Source of the DNA: Rebecca billardiae RCC1528 | Taxonomy: Eukaryota; Protista; Haptophyta | DNA length: 64,000 bases | Assembly: GCA_965240325.2 (NCBI GenBank) | Contig: OZ251222.1 | Coordinates: 3,844,001-3,908,000, forward strand | Reading direction: 5' to 3' | Shown here: positions 2,325 through 52,800 of the stretch, in pieces | How positions within the stretch are numbered: position 1 is the stretch's first letter | Layout of the letters: each line of letters begins with the position of its first letter | Translations under genes and position numbers: made by a program | Notes under the pieces: generated by a model | What the model saw: only the letters and a program-made list of their open reading frames with translations | Told to the model about the DNA's origin: nothing | Database searches by the model: none

Positions 2325-4863
2325 ATGGATCGGCCTCGCGGGCAGGTGCGCCGCGCGCGTCGCGCGCCGTGCCCCGGCGCGCAGCGATGTCGACGCTTGG
2401 TCGGCTTGCCGCCAGCGCCATGCCCCTGTCCTGGCGATGCGCGCGCGCGCGGCCAAGCGCGCGCGCGGGATGTGCGCGATTTGCGCTTGCCGCTGCGCTC
2501 AGCTCAGCCGCGTGCGGCCGGCGCCTGCTCCGCGTGCACGCGCAGGGCGAGGGTGCGAACATCATCCCACGTTTCGACGAGCCGGTCCCCGGCCATGGCC
2601 CGATGCGCGGGCCCCTCCTCGCCGAGACGAGCCTGATCGCTGCGACCAACGAGCGCTACTCCATGCTGACGCAGCTGTTCGAATCGGCGCCTGCAGACGA
2701 GCAGACGCCCTCGGCGGCGCTCGAGATGGCGGCGTCGGCGCTGGAGAGTACGGCCAGCCTCCTGCGCACCGCGCCGCCGGGGCCGGCCGAGCCGGCCGTC
2801 GACCCGAGCGCGCTCCCGCCTGCCAAGCGCAAGTGGACTGACGGCGCCGGGGCAGACGACGATGCGCACGCTGCCAGCCAGCGCGGCGAGGGCGTCGCGG
2901 GGCCGTTGGCGACGCAGCTGGACGAGCCATTGCCGCCCAGGGCATACGCCGCCTCGCCCGCGCCGCCGCTGCCGCCCGCCCTCGGCGCCAGTGCGCCGGA
3001 CGCGAGCAGCGCGGCCGGCGGTTGGCTCGACCCGAGGCCGGCTGGCGAGGCCGGCGCCGCCGACGTGGAGAGCACGCAGCGGGCGCGCGCATCGGTGCCG
3101 CGCGCGCCGCCGCCGGCGGCAGAGCCGACGTCCGCGCACGACGCGGGTTGGGCTGACGCGGCTGGCTTGCTCACGCGGCTAGACCACGCGGCCGCGGCCG
3201 CGGGCGCGCCCGCCGCGGCTGCCACGCCTGCGGTGGACGCGGCTGGGCCCGCGGCCGGCGGCGCGGCTGCTCCGCTGACCACCCTCGGCGCGCGAGCGCC
3301 CGCCGAGGCTGAGGCGGCGGCGGGTGCGGGCGTGCCTCACACCGCGGCGCCCGCCGCCGGCCCGACCGCCCTGTCAGCCCACACGCCCGTTGCGGCCGGC
3401 AGCGGGTGGGAGGGGGCGCATGCCACCGCGCAGGTCGGCGCAGACGAGCGCGCGCGCGCGAGCTCGCCTGCGAGCGCAGACGCGCCTGGGGGCGCGGAGG
3501 GCGCGCAGGGAGCCGCGGAGGACGCGCCGGGCAGCAGCGGCGTGTGGAAGCGCAACATCGGCTCGCGCAGGTGCGTCGCGCGTCGTGCCCCACCCCAACA
3601 CGACTGCGCGCCGTGTGCCGCAGGCGCCACCCTCGTGCAGCCGGCCAAACGGGGGGGCGCCGCGGCGCTGCGGCCGGCGGCTGCGCGCGCCCGCTGGCTG
3701 CGTGCCGCCCGCCCTGACCTCGCCGCCCCCCCCCCCGGCGCGCTGCCCCGCGCCCCCCTTCCGCCGCGCAGCGCGACGTACAAATGCCGCCGGTGCGGGC
3801 TGCCCAAGCGGCAGCACATGTGCGTGGCCCCGCTGCCGCCCCCCTCGCTGCCTGCGGACGAGACGGCGGGGGGCGCGCCCGCAGGGGCGCCCGCCTCGTC
3901 CGCCGCGCGCGCCGCGGTCGCGCTGTGGTCCTCCGACGAGAACGAGACCATCTCGCGCATGGTGCGCGAGCACGGCTTCAAGTGGACGCGGATCGCGCGC
4001 GAGCTTCCGGGCCGCACCGACAACGCGGTGCGCAACCGGTGGAAGCGGCTCGAGCGCATGCGCGCGCTGCGCGCCGAGCAGCTGAGCGGCGGCGCGGGGG
4101 GCGCGGGCGCGGCGTCGGGCGCGACGCCGTCCGCCGGCGCGTCCGACGCGAGCGGCGCCACCGCCGCGCCGCCCTCCGGCGTGCGCGGCTACCGCTGCTC
4201 CAAGTGCGGGCAGGGCAAGCGCGGCCACCTCTGCCCCTACGCCGAGCACCCGATCTCGGACGAGCTGCTCGGGGGAGAGCTGGGCGGAGAGGGCGCCGCC
4301 GGCTCGGGCGCGCACGGCAGCGCGGATGCGCCGCAGCCGTCGCAGCTCGCGCGCGCGCACGCCGACACGCCCGCCGCGAGCGCCGGCGCCGGCGGCAGCT
4401 GGTGCGGCGCGCTCACCTCGAGCGCGCCTCAACTGCCGCCGCCGCCGCCCCAGCAGCCGCCATCGGCGCCCGGCGCGCCGCGCGCCGCCGCCGCCGCTGG
4501 CGCTGGCGCCGCCTCCGCCGCTGCGGGCCCGGCCGAGGCGGCGGCGCGCGCGACGAGCTCGGCGGCGGGCGGCGGCGGCGCCACCGCCGCCGCGGCCAGC
4601 GCGTCGGGCCCCTCCGCCGACGGCTCCTTGCCCGGGCTGGACGAGGTGGCGGGCGCGATGCACTGGCTGATCGAGACGGCCGGCTCGGACGACGCGGACG
4701 CGCTGGGCTTTGCGCTCGGGCCTGGCCTCGCCGGGCTGATGGACGAGGAGGGCAGGGGCGGCGCGGAGGGCGCGCCGGGTGGCGCGGCGCACTCGGGCAA
4801 GGCGCCCGCGAGGCCCGCCGCCGCCGCCGCCGCCCCCTCGGGCGGTGCGCACGGCTCGGCCAC

Positions 4864-4897
<34 letters not shown>

Positions 4898-5539
4898 TCG
4901 GGCGCGCACGCAGAGCGCTCCGAGCGCGAGCGCGAGATGGGGGGCGGGAGCGGCGCCGGCGAGTGGCCGCCGCCGTTCTGGTGGGGCGCCGGCGGGTACG
5001 ACCCGGCGAGCTACGCGGTGGCCGCCGCGGCGTCGGCCAGCTGGTGGCCCGCGCCGCCGCCGATGATGGGCGGCGGCATGCCCCCGCCGTGGACGCTCGA
5101 CGCGCCGCCGCTCACCGCCGGCCACGCCGGCTGCGACGCGTGGCGGGCGGCCAACCACGCGATGGAGCGGTGGCAGCGGCAGCGGTACGAGGCGGCCATG
5201 GCGTACTACCGGCGGTACTGCCAGATGGCGGCGCGCTCGATGCAGCACCACGCGGCCGGCCCAGGCCCGCCGCTGTGGTGGCCGCCGTACATGCCGCCGC
5301 CGGGCTGGCTGGGCCCTATGGGCGCGGGCGCGGACGGCGGCGCAGGCGCGGATGGCGGCGCGGGCGCGGCGGACGCGCACGCGCCGCGCGGCGCGGACGA
5401 TCTGCTCGACGGCGCCGCGCCGAGCGCGCCGGGTGCTGCGGCGGACGCGGCGGTCACCGAGGTCGACGACATGCTGGCCGCGCGCATGCCCACGCCGCCC
5501 GCCGCACCGCTCGACGAGCACGACGCCGCAGGCTTGTAG
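2325..5539 (+). CDS. Myb/SANT-domain transcription factor with two CxxC-x6-HxC zinc knuckles
   Basis: Myb repeat WSSDENETISRMVREHGFKWTRIARELPGRTDNAVRNRW is flanked by YKCRRCGLPKRQHMC and YRCSKCGQGKRGHLC. Predicted GT-AG introns are 2346-2545 and 3571-3771. The 5' model is uncertain. Confidence 0.8.
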
Positions 5540-6011
5540 CGCAGCGCGCGCGCGAGCGGGCTGCACCGGCCGCGAGCGCGGTGGCGGCTGCTCGCATGTC
5601 GATGGATGGCGCGCGGCGGGAGGCGCGGCGGCGGCAGCGGCAGCGCACGAGGGCGCGTGCTGCGACCGCGCGGTGGCGTCGACTGCGCGTCCGCGCGGCG
5701 TCCGCGGTGACAGCTCGCTTGCGTCCACGCGATGCCGCGAGCGACGCGACCAGCCTCGACGGCGCGTCGTTCGACAGCGGCGCTGCGGTGGGCGCGGCGC
5801 CAGCAGCAGGCTGGTTGTGTTGACGGCGGCGCCCGGTGACACGGGACAGCCCGACAGGCCTCGTCCGCTCTGGAGCCTGGAGGCTCGATGCAGTCCAGTC
5901 TGAAGACTCTTACAGTCATCATCCACGCGCAGGCGCAGCGTCAGTAGTACACGTGTCAGAGCGCTGTAGCAGAATATAGCAGAAATAGACGAATATATTA
6001 AATTATTAATT

Positions 6012-43384: not shown

Positions 43385-44272
43385 ATGCAGCGCGCCGTCG
43401 CTGCGCTGGCCAGGGCACCGGGGCGGTTTCCGCGCGTGTTGACGCCTCGGAGGTGCGTCAACGCGCACATTGTGCGGACCCTGACTACTCACGCGGGGCG
43501 CGCTACGCTCCAACCCCGGCCATCTCCGCCAAGATGGGCGATTCTCAGCCTCGGCGCTTCTGCCGCGGCCTTTGCTCTCAAACACACAGTCAGCAGCTGT
43601 GACGCAAAGCTGGATCTCGAAGCGACGTCGATGGATGCCCTGTCGGTGGCCTTTCCCACCCTTTCGCGAGACGAGCTTCGCCGCTTCCTCAAGTCGTGCA
43701 AGGGGAACGTGCAGCGCACTGAGGAGAAGCTGAGGCGCAACCTCGCCTGGAGGGAAGCCACGTTTCCGCTCGCGCGCGAGGCGGTGCTCGACGATTTGCG
43801 GAGGGGCGTGCTCGTGCAGCACGGGTGTGACATGGACGGCCGCCCGATCCTGGTCTACTTCGGCAACCACTACCGCCCTGGCGAGAGCAACGTGGATGAC
43901 GTGGTGCGCGCCATGGTGTACGTGCTGGAGCATGCGATCACCACCATGCCCGACGGCGTCGAGCAGGTGGTGCTGTTCATCTACACGCCTCGCGGGGCGT
44001 CAATCGACTACTCGCTCATACGCTCACTCAGCGCGTGCTTCTCCGAGAACTATCCCGAGCGACTCCACCATGCCATCGTCTTCCCTGCTGGGCCCTGGGC
44101 CCGCTACTTTTGGTCGCTGATCAGATGGTGCTTCGTGCCCGCCGTGCGCGAGAAGGTGGTCCTGGTAAGGGACGGCCAGACCGAAGCGGCCGCGACCAAC
44201 GTTCATCCCTCGCAGCTGCCAAAGATGTTTGGGGGCGAAGAGGATTGGGTCTTCGACCCGGAGCTTGTCTGA
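43385..44272 (+). CDS. CRAL-TRIO (Sec14-like) lipid-binding protein
   Basis: Motifs are LRRFLK...NLAWR, GCDMDGRPIL, NYPERL, WSLIRWCFVPAVREKV and QLPKMFGG. The N-terminus resembles a mitochondrial presequence. Confidence 0.88.
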   Translation: MQRAVAALARAPGRFPRVLTPRRCVNAHIVRTLTTHAGRATLQPRPSPPRWAILSLGASAAAFALKHTVSSCDAKLDLEATSMDALSVAFPTLSRDELRRFLKSCKGNVQRTEEKLRRNLAWREATFPLAREAVLDDLRRGVLVQHGCDMDGRPILVYFGNHYRPGESNVDDVVRAMVYVLEHAITTMPDGVEQVVLFIYTPRGASIDYSLIRSLSACFSENYPERLHHAIVFPAGPWARYFWSLIRWCFVPAVREKVVLVRDGQTEAAATNVHPSQLPKMFGGEEDWVFDPELV

Positions 44273-44752: not shown

Positions 44753-46690
44753 TCATCGCTGTCTCCTCTCATCGTCGGTCAGGAGGAGGGCCAACTGCGC
44801 TTCGTCACATGCATCGGCCGAGTAGCCGACGCCGGACTCGCTCTCGCACATCACCCACTTGCGCACATAGTCCTCGTCCTTGTTCTCGTGCACCATGCGC
44901 ACGGTGCCAGAGAGAGCCTCGCTGTTTGCACCATTCATGACGCTCGGCAGCGCGAGGGGCACGACGATGACGACGAAGAGCAGCGGCAGAAAGATCGCGC
45001 AGCACGCGTCGAGGCCAGTCGCGATCTTCCTTGCAGCCGGGCCGTGCACCTCGGTCATGTCGTCATCCCGCTTGAGCCGCCTGACTGCCTCGGCAGCCAA
45101 CGACGCTGCGACGGACGGCAGAGACTGGTCAGGACCTGCCGCCACGCGTAGCCTGTCCGATCGCGCTGGTGCGTGTGAGGCGTCCGGTGCGCTCGTGGAC
45201 GCCGGCTCGGGCGAGGGCACCAACGGGGTGACACGCACGGACGGGTGAAGTGGAGCCGACCCAGACACCCGTTGGGGCGAAGCCGGCTCGGAACTGTGCG
45301 CGCGGCTGCGCCTCGCCTCCTGCCAGCCCGCATCACCCGCGTTCTCCTGCTCATAGCCCTTCTCGGCCATCCAACGCCGACGCATCACGGCGAGGCGCGT
45401 GACGCGCGGGTCGGTGACGAGGGGCGTGTTGCGCGCGAGCCAGAGCCACCCCTTCATCACCCACTGCACCGCCCAGCTGTGCGTCTCAGAGAGAGTCAGC
45501 GTCTCGCTCCGGTTGGCCACGATCTCCAGCCAGTCAGGGAAGGTGATGTGCGGGATGCCGTCATCGCCCAAGCGCTTGTCCACGTCTGCCAGGATGGCCT
45601 TCACCATCTTCTCGTCGAGGCCGAGCCGGCTGACGGCCTCGACCAGCTCGTCGCGCTCGAGCTCGCCGTTGTCGTTGCGGTCGACCTCGTGGAACATCTT
45701 GAGCAGTCGGTGCTCCGAGTAGTAGCCAGCGTTGGGGCGCACGTTGTGCAGCGAGACGGCGACGATCGAGATGACGGTCACCAGTAACATTGAACTTTGA
45801 CTCACCATGTAAAGAGAGGAGATCATCGTCCAGCGGTTCACCTTGGGCACTTCGTCGTGCGCGACGAGGTAGATGGCGACGACGGTGAGCAGCACCGTCA
45901 CGGAGAGCGAGATGCGCTCGCCCGAGTCGGGCGTGAGCACGAAGCTGCAGAAGCCGACCGCGGTGGACACGATTAACGGTAGGATGATCGAGTACGTGTA
46001 CGCCAGGTACTCGCGCCGAATCTGCAGGAAGAACTTGATCGTGGGGTACGGCTCGGGGCAGCACGAGTAGTACTGGTTCTCGTACACGCTGCGCGCCTCG
46101 ATGAGCTTGAACTCGGTGTGCTGGTGGAAGCCGTCAATGACCACGGGCACCTGGTTGCTGTCGCCGTCGAGCCGTGGCAGCACGCCCAGCTGGAAGCCGT
46201 TCATGTTCCAGCTGCCCAGGGTGAAGTTGCACGTCTGCGTGTCGAAAGGGAAGTCGTCCAGCTGCATCAGGCAGTGCATCGTGATCGTCGTGGGCTGCGC
46301 CGAGAAGAGGTCGCCGGTGTGGTACACCTGGGCCATCACCTCAAAGGGGACAGACTGCTCGATCGTCTCGTACACGACCACGTCCGGCGTCCAGATCAGG
46401 TCGCGAGGCATGATGTACGACGTGCGCCCTCCCCACTCGGCCGGGTCCCACGTCAGCCGCTCGTCGCGCCAATACTGGCGGAACCATGCCTGGAGCTTGA
46501 TCGACTGCACGGCAGTGTCCATTTCGATGATATTCTGCATGTTCATCTGCATGCGCGCGACCGGCAGGATGGCCGGCGGCGAGAGGCGGTTGTAGTTCCC
46601 GAGCAGCGCGGAGCCAAGATCTGTCTGATTGCCATCGAACGCTGCTGCGCGCGAGACGAGCGCGCATGCCAGGAGCACGCTGCGCCGCAT
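44753..46690 (-). CDS. Cys-loop pentameric ligand-gated ion channel, nAChR alpha-like, with EF-hands in the M3-M4 loop
   Basis: It has a signal peptide, WTPDVVVY, Cys-loop CLMQLDDFPFDTQTC, GSW, YYSCCPEPY, M2 SGERISLSVTVLL, four TM helices and EF loop DRNDNGELERDE. Confidence 0.93.
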   Translation of the reverse strand: MRRSVLLACALVSRAAAFDGNQTDLGSALLGNYNRLSPPAILPVARMQMNMQNIIEMDTAVQSIKLQAWFRQYWRDERLTWDPAEWGGRTSYIMPRDLIWTPDVVVYETIEQSVPFEVMAQVYHTGDLFSAQPTTITMHCLMQLDDFPFDTQTCNFTLGSWNMNGFQLGVLPRLDGDSNQVPVVIDGFHQHTEFKLIEARSVYENQYYSCCPEPYPTIKFFLQIRREYLAYTYSIILPLIVSTAVGFCSFVLTPDSGERISLSVTVLLTVVAIYLVAHDEVPKVNRWTMISSLYMVSQSSMLLVTVISIVAVSLHNVRPNAGYYSEHRLLKMFHEVDRNDNGELERDELVEAVSRLGLDEKMVKAILADVDKRLGDDGIPHITFPDWLEIVANRSETLTLSETHSWAVQWVMKGWLWLARNTPLVTDPRVTRLAVMRRRWMAEKGYEQENAGDAGWQEARRSRAHSSEPASPQRVSGSAPLHPSVRVTPLVPSPEPASTSAPDASHAPARSDRLRVAAGPDQSLPSVAASLAAEAVRRLKRDDDMTEVHGPAARKIATGLDACCAIFLPLLFVVIVVPLALPSVMNGANSEALSGTVRMVHENKDEDYVRKWVMCESESGVGYSADACDEAQLALLLTDDERRQR

Positions 46691-46869
46691 GCCCAAGCAG
46701 TCGACTTGGCCGTGTTCACTTGCGCCCCCACCCCGGACGGTTGCAAGGGGCAGGCTCGACCGTTACGTTAAAACATAGTAAACTGTATGATACCAACACT
46801 GACTCCATACTGTAATACCCACATTACCCGCCCACGTATCATCAGATCATGCAGAGTCGCGTCGCGTCA

Positions 46870-48003
46870 TCAATGATCAATCATAGTAAGGTCGCCCAGC
46901 CCGAAGAGCCGCTCGTACTCGGCGAGCACCCGCTCCCGGATGGGCTGGCTCTCGGCGAACAGCGCGCGCTGGTACGCGCGGTAGGCGGCGCGCCCGCGGC
47001 TCGTCTCCACGCGGATCGGTGACAGGTCCGCCAGCGTGAGCGGTGAAAGCTGGTGCGCGCCGTGCGGCACGGGCGCGGGCGCGTCGTCATCGTCGCCCTC
47101 CGCGCCTGCGGTGGCTGGCGGGCTGGCACACGCCCAGCGCGACACGTCGTACGGAGAGGCGCGCATGTCAAGGACCCGCGCCTTGAGCGCGAGGCGCAGC
47201 GTGAGCGGCACCAGCGACGCGTCGACGTACGGCATCGCCTTGAGCACCCACTTGAACAGGTCCATCGCGGCGTGCACGCACGCGGGCTGCTCCGCGGCGG
47301 GCTGCCCCGGGCGCGTCAGCTCGCCCAGGCGGTTGAGCGGGCGCGCCGGCTCGGTGAAGAAGCGGAATGCGTCGTAGTGCGTGCACCGGATGGGCGTGGA
47401 CTCGACGCACGCGTTCAGCTCGTCTTGACTCACGCGCAGCGGCACCGCTCGCTGGTGGCGCTGCGGCGGCGGGACGCCCGCCTCGGTCGCGGCGGACGGG
47501 TGATACAGCATCGCCCACTCGTGCAGGCCGTGGCAGAGGAAGTGCGGCTCGCGGCCGACGGAGGCGCGGAGCACCTCGAGCCCGTGCCGAAGGGCCCCGA
47601 GCTTGCGCTGCGTCAGCGCGCCACCGTCCGGCGCCAGCACGAGCGCGCCCGTCTCCTCGTCGAGCGCCCAGTGCTTGGCGGTTGGGATCATTTTGCCCAA
47701 GTCAGCCCTGGCGACGCCTTGCAGGCCGACGCCGAGGCCGGGACTCCAGTGAAGGAGCTGCTTCGGCTTAAATGAGTAGTACTCGAAGACGAAGTTGCGG
47801 ATTGGGTCGTCGCGGTCGTACGCCAAGCTGTCGTCCGTCCCGATGGCCGAAAGGACGCGATCGCGGTGCGCCCGTGCCCGCGCCCGCCACTCGTCTGGCC
47901 GAAGCACGGCGGAGACGGCAGGCGCGCGCGCAGCGACGCTCGTCAGGGCGGATTTGCCTGCGCCCGTGGCCATGGTCGCCGCGAGCATACAGGAGAGTAG
48001 CAT
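46870..48003 (-). CDS. Conserved bacterial-type protein of unproven function (family often labelled 3-methyladenine DNA glycosylase)
   Basis: Motifs are FVFEYY, CHGLHEWAMLY, CTHYDAFRFFT, EQPACVHAAMDLFKW and LDMRASPYD. The family was recognised from memory. Confidence 0.7.
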   Translation of the reverse strand: MLLSCMLAATMATGAGKSALTSVAARAPAVSAVLRPDEWRARARAHRDRVLSAIGTDDSLAYDRDDPIRNFVFEYYSFKPKQLLHWSPGLGVGLQGVARADLGKMIPTAKHWALDEETGALVLAPDGGALTQRKLGALRHGLEVLRASVGREPHFLCHGLHEWAMLYHPSAATEAGVPPPQRHQRAVPLRVSQDELNACVESTPIRCTHYDAFRFFTEPARPLNRLGELTRPGQPAAEQPACVHAAMDLFKWVLKAMPYVDASLVPLTLRLALKARVLDMRASPYDVSRWACASPPATAGAEGDDDDAPAPVPHGAHQLSPLTLADLSPIRVETSRGRAAYRAYQRALFAESQPIRERVLAEYERLFGLGDLTMIDH

Positions 48004-48167
48004 TGGCACCCAAGGGCAAGCGCTCAGGAGCCAGCCGCCATCGCCGAGCAGACAGCAGTTCGATGCAGGCGAGTCCGGCCGGCCCGCAAGCGCGGGACTG
48101 GAAGTCTGGAACGGCGTGAAGACAGTGTGGTCAAGGCGGCAAGCGGCCAGCTTCTCGAGCGCGCGCG

Positions 48168-49878: not shown

Positions 49879-52800
49879 TCAGCCGTCCAGCAGCGAGAAG
49901 AAGGTGATCTCGCCGACAACGAGGCGCTCGAGCCACTCGCCGAGCTCGTCCGGCGACATGGGGCCCGTGTAGTACGCGCCGCGCGTGCGCTCGATGTCGG
50001 ACGCGCGGCGCAGCGCGATGCAGCCGCAGCGCCGCAGCACGGCCTGCACGCGGTGGAAGATTGGGTTGCCGCCGTCCGGCTGCGCACGCACACGCGCAGC
50101 GCGCGGAGTGCGGCTAGTCGCGTCAGCTCGCGGTGGGCGGGGCGCGCGTCGGGTGCACGGCGCGGGCGCGCCGCGCGCACCTCGCCCAGGTCCACCACCG
50201 CAAACACGAAGCGCCGACTCCCCCTGTACCGGTGTGACGCGAGCGTCTGCGCGGTCGCGAGGCACCGCCTGCGCCGGCCGAGCGTGCGCGCGCGCGGGGG
50301 GCGCGTCAGAGGAGGGGGTGGTGCAAGGCCGAGCGCGCAGCGGGCAGCGCGCAGCGGGCAGCGCGCAGCGGGCAGCGCGCAGCGGGCAGCGCGCAGCGGG
50401 CAGCGCGCAGCGGGCAGCGGGCAGCGCGCAGCGGGCAGCGGGCGCGCACTTGGAGGTGTAGATGTTCGAGCCGATCGGCAGCAGCACGAGGAAGGGAGCC
50501 AGGGAGAGCGCGGTGGCGACGCCGCCCGCGTGCAGCCTGAGCACCGAGCCCGCGCCCTCGTCCGCTCCCGACGGCTCCTCCGCGCGGCCGCGCCCGTTGT
50601 GGAACGAGCCGCTCGCGCTGCCGGAGAACGAGGACGATGCGTCGTCGTAGTGCGCGTGGCGCGCCGAGCCGCGCTGCTGCGCGCCGGAGCCGTCCGGCCG
50701 CCTCCGCTCGCCCCCTCTGCCCGCGCCCTCCGCCCCCGGCTCAGGGTGTGCGGACGAGTCGCGCGAGCGGCCGTCGTCTCTCGAGCGCGCGCCCGAGGCG
50801 CCGCCGCGCGCGTCGGCGGCGCCGCCCGCGCGGCCGTTGGCGCCGGCGGCGCGGCCCTCCGCGCTCGCGCCCTGCGCGCCCGCGCCGCCGCCCGCCGCGC
50901 TCCCCTCGCCCTGCGCCCACGCGCCGCGCAGCAGGAAGGCGAGCAGCGCCACCCCGACCGGCAGCGTGAGGTACAGCGCCAGCCTCTGCTGGAAGGGCAG
51001 CAGCTCACCAAAGAGCAGCGCGTACCCGCGCGCGAAGATGGACGGGGGCGCGTCGGCGAGCAGCGGCGGCAGCTCGGACGAGCCGCGCGCCGCGCGCACC
51101 GTGCCGCCCAGCACGCCGTCAGCCCAGCCGAGCAGCGCGCGCGCCGCGCCGCTCGGAGGCGTGAGCGTCGGCAGCGGCTCGGGGTAGACCGCCCAGCGCG
51201 CGGCCGCGAGGCCGTCGGCGGCGGGCAGCAGGAGCGCGATCGCGGGGAGCGGGGGCGTGGCGGCGGCGGGGCGGGCGCCCGCGGGCCTCGCGCCGGCCCT
51301 GCTGCCGCCCGCGCCGCCGCCCGCGCCGCCGCTGCCCAGCAGCGCGCGCACGAGGGGCGCCTGCCGCGCGCCGTCCACCACCGCCCAGCGCACGCGCGGC
51401 TCGGCGCCGCGCGCGTCCGCGCGCGCCTCCGCCTCCGCCTCGCGCACGAGCGCGAGCGCTGCCGCGCACCGCGCGCCGGCGGGGTTGTCGCACAGCAGCA
51501 GCGCGCAGCCGTGCGCGCCGTGCGCGCCGCGCACGGCGCGCACACACAGCCGGTGCACGTTCGACGCGCGCAGCAGCGGCACGCGCGGCCCCGCGCGCCC
51601 CTCGAGCAGCGTGACCAGCCGCACGCGCACCGCCGCCTCGGCGGAGAGGCCGGCCGCCGCCTCGTCCAGCGCGGGGTCGTGCCCGCTCGACAGCGGGATC
51701 ACGTCGGGCGGCTGGCCGACGCCGTCCCTCCACACCGCGACAGACGGCAGCTCTCGCGCGCCCAGCTCGCGCGCCACCTCCGACCCCGCCGAGCGCCCGC
51801 CCACCCCGCCGGAGACGTGCACGTGCCCGAGCACGTACCGCACGCCGCCGTTCCCCGCCGCCACGCCGCCCTCCGCCGAGCCGCCGACGAAGCGGTGCGA
51901 GACGTACCGGAAAAGCAGCGAGTCGCCCGACGGGTGCGAGGACAGCACGACCACCGGCGTGCGCTCGTCCGCGGGCGAGCCCGTGCGCGAGCCGTGCCGC
52001 CGCAAGAAGTCGCGCAGGAAGCGGCCGTTGGCGATGCGCGAGACGCGCGCGGACGGGAAGAAGCGACGGCTCCACTCGCCCACCGCCTCGGCGCTCAGCT
52101 GCGCGCCGTAGTACGCCGTCGCGCGCGCCGCGTCGCCGCCCTCGTCGCCGACCATCACAACCGTCGGCAGCCGGTGCACGATCGAGCGGTACCGGCGCAG
52201 GATCTCCCAGTTGGTGCGCTGCGCGCACGAGCGCACGCGCACGGGGGCGGCGAGGGCGCGGGGCGTGCGCGGCAGCGGACGGCGGCTCGCGTGAGCCGGG
52301 CCGGGCGCGGGCACGGCGCGGCGCGCGCACGCGGCTGGGCGCGGCACGGCGCGGCGCGCGCGCGTACGCCGTTGGTGTTCACGCGCCCCAGCCGGATCAT
52401 CGGGTACATCCGCTCGGCCAGCGCCTCCCACTCGGGCGCAAACCGCACGGACTGGTCGGAGCTGTCCGAGTAGAAGAGCACAAGCCACAGCCGGCGCTGC
52501 GGCCCGCCCGGCCCGCTCTCGCGCGCGCCGACGAGGAGGTCCCAGTTGCGGTAGTCCAGGTCGACGGTCTGCGAGAAGATGGGCCGGTAGCTCGGCCGCC
52601 CGCCGCGGCCGTACGCCCCGCCCCCGAACTGGCGCCCAAACATCATCTCCTCGAACGGGTCGACGCGCTGGTGCGCCGAGCCGCCGCGGCCGCCGCGCGG
52701 CGGGGCGCGGTTGGCGTACTCGGGGCCGTACGCGTCGTACTGCCGGCGGGTCTCCGCGTCGGACAGCGTCTCGTACGCCTGCGCGATCGCCGCGAACTTC

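Follow-up and report, generated by a model that had tools for sequence, protein, structure and literature searches.

A predicted nicotinic-alpha-type Cys-loop receptor with an EF-hand pair directly after M3 in the haptophyte Rebecca billardiae

To our knowledge, the cytoplasmic domain between the membrane helices M3 and M4 is the least understood part of Cys-loop receptors. In animal receptors M3 is followed by an MX helix, which adjoins the place where the pre-M4 helices form the ion exit. Here we describe a gene that is predicted to encode a Cys-loop receptor with an EF-hand pair at this place. The gene lies on the minus strand of a 64,000-nucleotide stretch of Rebecca billardiae RCC1528 (contig OZ251222.1); this whole stretch is called the window below. 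An earlier reading of the letters (the original prediction) had proposed a nicotinic-alpha-type channel with a built-in EF-hand module and had pointed out that protist Cys-loop homologues exist. They do: cationic-type, metazoan-like Cys-loop genes have been reported from the haptophyte Emiliania, from Aureococcus and from ciliates (Jaiteh, Taly and Hénin 2016; PMC4795631). According to the same paper, a biological role is known for no Cys-loop receptor of a unicellular organism. Its authors regard the M3-M4 region as unalignable, and the terms EF-hand, calcium and M3-M4 occur zero times in the text. The window gene fits the class of protist cationic receptors by the cation signature of its M2, while its EF fusion and the family that carries the fusion are not described there.

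Calcium sensors close to a membrane pore or a transport chain are familiar from other proteins. Polycystin-2 and NOX5/RBOH have a built-in cytoplasmic EF-hand pair, through which local Ca2+ regulates them directly. In CaV, NMDA and CNG channels calcium-dependent inactivation is mediated by calmodulin, a separate sensor protein bound to the channel. These channels are our working analogy: calcium that enters through the pore loads an EF lobe at the inner mouth, and gating changes. Unlike in these channels, the sensor of the window protein is built into the subunit, and each lobe has one canonical site. In diatoms, a survey of calcium channels from 2024 mentions EF-hands for two-pore channels only (PMC11085791). 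The two-pore channel TPC1 carries them between its two halves and is like the window protein in having an EF pair inside a membrane-transport chain. TPC1, polycystin-2 and NOX5/RBOH have unrelated folds, and none of them has a gate that opens through an extracellular, Cys-loop-type ligand-binding domain.

The receptor gene is an uninterrupted open reading frame of 645 codons plus stop, counted from the ATG at 46690. The upstream limit of the frame is a TTG at 46696; the ATG is the likely eukaryotic start, and the stop codon occupies 44753-44755. Residue numbers below start at the TTG codon, and the numbering of P0001, an identical protein from another contig, is two less. The following features define the receptor part:

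44753..46690, minus strand: complete, intron-less coding sequence (open reading frame, identical protein P0001, codon periodicity, second allele)
46010..46621, minus strand: Neur_chan_LBD, the extracellular ligand-binding domain (Pfam; alignment to alpha4, alpha7 and 5-HT3A)
46370-46393, minus strand: loop A, WTPDVVVY, residues 102-109 (alignment to alpha4)
46229..46273, minus strand: Cys-loop, C142-x13-C156 with FPFD inside (motif; both Cys invariant in 18 full-length relatives)
46208-46216, minus strand: loop B, GSW, residues 161-163 (alignment to alpha4)
46046..46072, minus strand: loop C, YYSCCPEPY with vicinal Cys, residues 209-217 (alignment to alpha4)
45740..45988, minus strand: M1-M3, Neur_chan_memb (Pfam; hydropathy peaks)
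45914-45925, minus strand: cytoplasmic ring of M2, SGER, residues 258-261 (Gly at -2', Glu at -1', Arg at 0')

Both receptor domains score above their Pfam cut-offs. Neur_chan_LBD covers residues 26-229 and profile positions 3-215 of 216 (E 2.4e-42, 145 bits, cut-off 26), and Neur_chan_memb covers residues 237-319 (E 7e-10, 40 bits, cut-off 28.1). The best matches among solved structures are the alpha4 (3e-37), alpha7 (3e-36) and Torpedo/muscle alpha (1e-34) subunits of nicotinic acetylcholine receptors (nAChRs). Further matches are 5-HT3A (2e-33) and, from a nematode, the betaine receptor ACR-23 (4e-31). Each of these alignments spans the N-terminal helix through the end of M3.

The aromatic-box loops A-D, the Cys-loop and the GER ring named in the original prediction are all in place, and the loops align to alpha4; the Trp of loop D is the first Trp of W-F-R-Q-Y-W. 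The window protein carries Leu in position 9' of M2, Asp/Glu in positions 20'/21', and no Pro insertion. In 18 full-length relatives Arg is found at 0' in all 18, Glu at -1' in 13 and Leu at 9' in 17, and the vicinal Cys pair of loop C is kept in 16 of the 17 that cover the region. With vicinal Cys, a full aromatic box and Gly-Glu-Arg ahead of M2, the protein reads as a genuine member of the Cys-loop receptors, of the cationic, nicotinic-alpha type, as had been proposed. Homomeric assembly is plausible because loops A-C, the principal face, occur in one chain together with the complementary Trp. Since the nicotinic-type aromatic box is complete, the predicted ligand is a small quaternary ammonium or similar cation. 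Choline, betaine, acetylcholine and dimethylsulfoniopropionate (DMSP) are reasonable first candidates.

Animal alpha7, alpha9/alpha10, alpha4 and 5-HT3A have the same domains in the same order, and loops A-D, the Cys-loop, the Gly-Glu-Arg/Lys ring and the 9' Leu align. The best named database matches are animal alpha10- or alpha7-like subunits. In contrast to the animal nAChRs, to which it is 31-34% identical, the window protein falls in a separate clade, has a long tail after M4 and belongs to a host without a nervous system. The EF pair replaces the short MX helix. It comprises the following features:

45485..45715, minus strand: EF-hand pair (helix-loop-helix twice), starting about 8 residues after M3 (AlphaFold2 (AF2), VIA-align, family profile)
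45647..45682, minus strand: canonical EF loop 1, DRNDNGELERDE, residues 339-350 (PS00018; ligand positions conserved)
45530..45586, minus strand: degenerate EF loop 2 and start of the exiting helix (…GDDGIPHITFPDW), residues 371-389 (strand pairing with loop 1)
45374..45475, minus strand: helices after the EF pair, with the motif D-G-L-A-x-x-H-N and then a basic stretch (conservation; helices 87-102 and 109-120 of the AF2 model)

The EF-hand pair directly after M3 is genuine. It consists of a helix (328-338), loop 1, a helix, a turn with conserved Gly-Leu, a helix (362-378), loop 2 and a helix that begins at Trp 389. Loop 1 matches the PROSITE pattern PS00018. Any match to this pattern arose in only 52 of 20,000 shuffles of the window protein (0.26%). 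Pattern, fold and family profile agree on the canonical loop that the original prediction had placed right after M3. The second hand is degenerate, also as predicted: loop 2 (G-D-D-G-I-P-H-I-T-F-P-D) has no ligand residue in position 1 or 5, and position 6 is occupied by Pro.

Structure prediction and remote homology lead to the same fold. An AF2 monomer model of the module, built from a 37-sequence alignment, has a mean predicted local distance difference test score (pLDDT) of 81.5, exceeds 90 over the pair and shows the classical EF topology, with a short strand in each loop. The full-length monomer model (five sequences) is poor (pLDDT 58.7) and served for secondary structure only; the bridge strands between the loops are present in both models. 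When the module is compared to the PDB with Foldseek, the top 50 matches are all EF-hand proteins, with weak E-values of 0.013 and above. VIA-align places the module on the calmodulin N-lobe with Z 10.0, which we count as agreement and not as proof, since helical models easily reach middling Z (root-mean-square deviation 2.6 Å, 77 of 78 residues). Centrin, S100 and penta-EF proteins come just behind. A profile of the module (A3) matches radial spoke protein 7 (8e-31), calcium-dependent protein kinases (4e-21), centrin (1e-18) and calmodulin (about 1e-17), with both hands aligned.

The fusion is not confined to the window. An initial search found four close relatives, P0002-P0005. P0003 and P0004 carry the module, and P0005 has an unrelated loop. 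We then searched 1.84 billion cluster representatives with a profile of M1-M3 plus module (A2; E ≤ 1e-10). This search returned 283 proteins, and about 41 of them match in an unbroken stretch that passes from the helices of the membrane domain into the EF part. The remaining matches are either proteins with multiple EF-hands (EF part only) or receptors (helices only). The relatives are environmental and protist records from MMETSP, JGI/IMG, ENA and Logan, and their taxon is known from ESM Atlas cluster labels only. A word-indexed search with the EF region alone returned only the query, and with an 18-sequence profile it returned nine proteins; such searches are uninformative on absence. Hence the original picture of a single gene needs correction: the fusion it described is real, but it is not a one-off, being carried by about 41 clusters.

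Across this family the architecture is regular. PS00018 matches at the homologous position in 28 of the 41 relatives, and in every full-length member checked the match lies 76-84 residues beyond the GER ring. Nearly all full-length members have the vicinal Cys and the Cys-loop. Individually, 25 of 37 family modules match EF-hand_6 (best E 6.7e-15). In loop 1 position 1 is Asp in 41/41 relatives, position 3 is Asp, Asn or Ser in 38/41, position 5 is Ser, Asn, Asp or Thr in 38/41, and position 6 is Gly in 38/41. Position 8 is Leu, Ile, Val or Met in all 41, position 12 is Glu in 36/41 and Asp in 2 more, and Phe stands at position -3 in 41/41. The mean identity of the module across the family is 27%. 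Within such a divergent module conservation concentrates on the metal ligands, as expected under selection for metal binding. We consider it quite likely that loop 1 binds Ca2+.

In most members hand 2 is short or degenerate; its position 13 is Trp in 39 of 41. A canonical hand 2 occurs in P0081, P0082, P0084 and P0099, and in P0091 both loops are canonical and lie 34 residues apart. Since some members keep a canonical hand 2, the family ancestor probably had a true EF pair. The His of the motif D-G-L-A-x-x-H-N, in the helices that follow the pair, is nearly invariant across the family.

The ESM Atlas contains the same combination. A feature search returned an 83-member cluster (score 0.97), automatically named 'EF hand/…/Neurotransmitter-gated ion-channel'. 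Of its members 99% have Neur_chan_LBD and 95% have EF-hand_6. The commonest phylum in this cluster is Haptophyta. A second cluster, with 56 members and a score of 0.95, is named 'Acr-7 protein' and is also assigned to Haptophyta. A full-text literature search, with most subscription journals outside its coverage, turned up no report of a Cys-loop receptor with an EF-hand in its loop. Thus the fusion is undescribed in the searchable literature, yet present unremarked in automatically annotated clusters. The original prediction saw the novelty in the fusion; this stands for the papers searched and does not stand for the databases. On these comparisons the EF fusion characterises a protist family (Haptophyta in those records that give a taxon) with conserved ligand residues. 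We are all but certain that the combination of receptor and EF-hands is real.

The module was absent from all animal sequences retrieved, in line with the earlier remark that animal nAChR M3-M4 loops do not normally carry EF-hands. The family is also separate from animal receptors in phylogenies. In a first tree of the 49 best matches, the five closest sequences form a clade on a long branch (Shimodaira-Hasegawa-like approximate likelihood ratio test (SH-aLRT) 100, starred), beside animal alpha7/9/10-like subunits (84). A second tree was built by a quick search from core columns only, with the loop left out and a single GABA-A sequence as the root. It places all 21 EF-bearing receptors inside one group of 28 rows, with the animal group separate (90). 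The 28-row group also contains three rows without EF-hands (P0005, P0185 and P0177) and three truncated rows. This topology would be consistent with one acquisition of the module and subsequent loss. The window protein is not placed as an ortholog of any named animal nAChR subunit, but within the protist and environmental clade.

What could an EF pair do in such a receptor? The chain runs from a predicted signal peptide through the ligand-binding domain, M1-M3, the EF pair, the conserved helices and a probably disordered linker to the pre-M4 helix, M4 and the tail. By homology, the EF module would be cytoplasmic and stand at the place of the MX helix of animal receptors. We favour, with reasonable but far from full confidence, a subunit of a pentameric ligand-gated cation channel in which the calmodulin-like EF pair, with one predicted working calcium site in each subunit, provides direct calcium feedback. 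An extracellular compound of the quaternary ammonium type would open the pore, and cations would enter, Ca2+ probably among them. Ca2+ under the pore, from the pore itself or from another cellular rise, would bind loop 1, at up to five sites in one channel. The shape of the EF lobe would then change, and the effect would reach M3 through the short linker of fixed length. The lobe may also clamp the conserved amphipathic helix that follows the pair. Either way, the change would feed back on gating by altering desensitisation, open probability or conductance. Our guess for the likeliest direction is negative feedback, that is, calcium-dependent inactivation.

Several observations weigh against calcium feedback on the channel. 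The EF-hand models of Pfam are narrowly missed by the window protein: EF-hand_1 scores 24.3-24.4 for the isolated segment (cut-off 25.4), and EF-hand_7 scores 26.1 for the window protein (cut-off 30). The scan suggested in the original prediction succeeded directly for the two receptor domains, and for the EF-hand only through the relatives, where P0004 passes the cut-off (31.9 vs 25) besides the EF-hand_6 matches given above. From the scores of the window protein alone, the EF-hand would be only probable. Just one of the two loops is canonical, and in other proteins a single canonical EF loop often means low affinity. P0002, the closest full-length relative, has lost the loop ligands (DEEKSDELELSV) and kept the module, so its role may be independent of calcium. 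A nested subgroup (P0005, P0185 and P0177) has no module at all. Because the loop of P0002 is dead and this subgroup lacks EF-hands, the role of the module is dispensable or not always calcium-dependent. Support for the clade of 28 rows is moderate (SH-aLRT 85, unstarred, quick search). Ca2+ permeation is inferred and cannot be read from the sequence, and no RNA sequencing runs are listed for the organism. The basis of the feedback channel is comparison of sequences and folds. On balance, we give a slight preference to the view that Ca2+ binding regulates the channel itself rather than serving docking or output.

Docking would make the EF pair a structural module. It could anchor the receptor to the cytoskeleton, to the flagellar or haptonemal apparatus or to a kinase, or it could aid assembly or trafficking, with or without calcium. 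M3-M4 loops of animal receptors have clustering and trafficking roles. That P0002 retains its module despite the lost loop ligands fits docking, as do the degenerate second hand of most members and the kind of residue conserved best outside the loop (Phe -3, Trp 13 of hand 2 and the His of the following helix), all of which are core or interface-type positions. However, a scaffold needs none of the ligands of loop 1, and these, including the bidentate Glu12 and Gly6, are conserved far above the 27% background. The short M3 linker of fixed length is a further point against a mere anchor. We regard docking as unlikely. Output is another alternative: Ca2+ from the pore loads the lobe, the lobe activates a downstream target, and the receptor is a channel and calcium transducer in one. 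Calmodulin and centrin lobes, which the pair resembles, clamp target helices, and by homology the pore's predicted ion exit is next to the EF site. A conserved amphipathic helix comes next in the same chain, though, which favours an intramolecular target, and the neighbouring genes (CRAL-TRIO, NUDIX and TFIIS-type) offer no candidate partner. An output device seems improbable to us.

Alternatively, the gene could be a relic that is silent, or an artefact of animal origin, produced by assembly or contamination. The lack of a listed RNA run would agree with this, and so would the best named matches, which are animal alpha10- or alpha7-like. The state of the gene speaks against it. The frame of 645 codons is intact, and third-position guanine-cytosine (GC) content is 0.9-1.0 over codons 31-450 (second position 0.23-0.53), as in a highly biased host gene. 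P0001 (645 amino acids) is identical to the window protein and was called on an independent genomic contig of 8 kb. It has the same neighbours there: a NUDIX gene, a 372-amino-acid gene upstream, a CRAL-TRIO gene downstream on the opposite strand and a TFIIS-type gene. In a third assembly there is an allele with a single codon change, V350I, so that gene and neighbours recur in two further assemblies with one codon different; for dN/dS (nonsynonymous against synonymous substitution) the alleles offer this one difference in total. Identity to animal subunits is only 31-34%, and the protein groups with protist and environmental sequences. Animal contamination is ruled out by the shared neighbours and the separate protist clade, and a relic or artefact of any kind would surprise us greatly.

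An intron that hides the EF segment was also considered, and codon periodicity together with conservation at the protein level rules it out. In the EF codons third-position GC is 0.9-1.0 and second-position GC 0.23-0.30; because the one is high and the other low, the segment is coding in the receptor frame. The MMETSP transcript of the relative P0002, marked complete, runs through M3, the module and M4. Hence the EF segment is retained in the mRNA of this relative.

Regulation of the channel by its own EF pair can be carried one step further, to a specific biology. Haptophyte-type receptors may be self-adapting chemoreceptors: an alpha7-like receptor would be opened by an osmolyte (choline, glycine betaine, acetylcholine or DMSP), admit Ca2+, and then be shut or tuned via its own EF pair. 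The osmolyte, a quaternary ammonium or sulfonium compound, would come from neighbours, grazers or lysed cells. This full scenario is speculative, and we would not bet on it. If true, this would be the first case of a Cys-loop receptor with a defined second-messenger sensor as its cytoplasmic domain, and a natural tool for probing how the cytoplasmic domain communicates with the gate. A large natural family with a calcium sensor rigidly tethered to M3 offers a handle on the role of unicellular receptors and on the M3-M4 domain. The prediction is simple: the current should vary with cytoplasmic Ca2+, and mutating the loop should abolish this dependence. The family also suggests that ecologically dominant marine algae use ligand-gated calcium signalling. 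Its members with zero, one or two working hands form a natural comparison series.

The remaining parts of the protein are these:

46640..46690, minus strand: predicted signal peptide, MRRSVLLACALVSRAAA (hydrophobic N-terminus ahead of the N-terminal helix that aligns to nAChR alpha; read by eye)
45116..45334, minus strand: cytoplasmic stretch rich in Pro, Ser and Ala (AF2 pLDDT <50; length varies among relatives)
44918..45118, minus strand: pre-M4 (MA-like) helix and M4 (hydropathy; one long helix in AF2; family motif)
44756..44917, minus strand: tail after M4, about 54 residues, predicted extracellular (Cys residues in common with relatives)

The predicted cut of the signal peptide (A-A-A / F; 46634-46645, minus strand) leaves Phe at +1, as in presequences for secondary plastids. 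Plastid targeting is ruled out: there is no space for a transit peptide, Phe is not found in P0002 or P0005, and we attribute it to chance. Hydropathy has four peaks, M1, M2, M3 and then a helix at about 557-591, and the family motif D-P-T-E-x-x-A-R-R-x-A-x-x-x-D stands directly ahead of M4. The stretch 45116-45334 is probably a disordered linker. Its codon periodicity is weaker, with third-position GC of 0.73-0.77 compared to 0.9-1.0 in the rest of the gene, and an in-frame intron (length divisible by three) within it is conceivable. In the tail (44756-44917) a Thr/Val-x-His motif and Cys are common to P0002, P0003, P0060, P0067 and P0074.

Introns split the genes of relatives (loci L002, 2386-3315, and L004, 681-971), and for this reason family proteins in the databases are often truncated. 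In P0004 the pre-M4 helix and M4 lie downstream in another frame, and the downstream exon contains a duplicated I-T-E-R-E-L-x-D-P-A-Q-K-I-A-R unit. The ligand-binding exon of P0003 lies upstream of the called gene. Among family members or their neighbours, P0073/P0228, P0068 and P0136 have N-terminal extensions of 100-700 residues before the ligand-binding domain.

The window contains one copy of the receptor gene. About 180 bases (46697-46869) separate the receptor start from the stop of an upstream open reading frame of 379 codons on the same strand (46870-48009). On the other side, about 480 bases lie between the receptor stop and the end of the CRAL-TRIO gene (43385-44272, plus strand). 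The gene arrangement is thus compact. The window is GC-rich, with a GC content of 0.57-0.81 in steps of 2 kb; it is highest at 4001-6000 and 50001-52000 (0.79-0.81) and drops to 0.57-0.61 between 28 and 34 kb.

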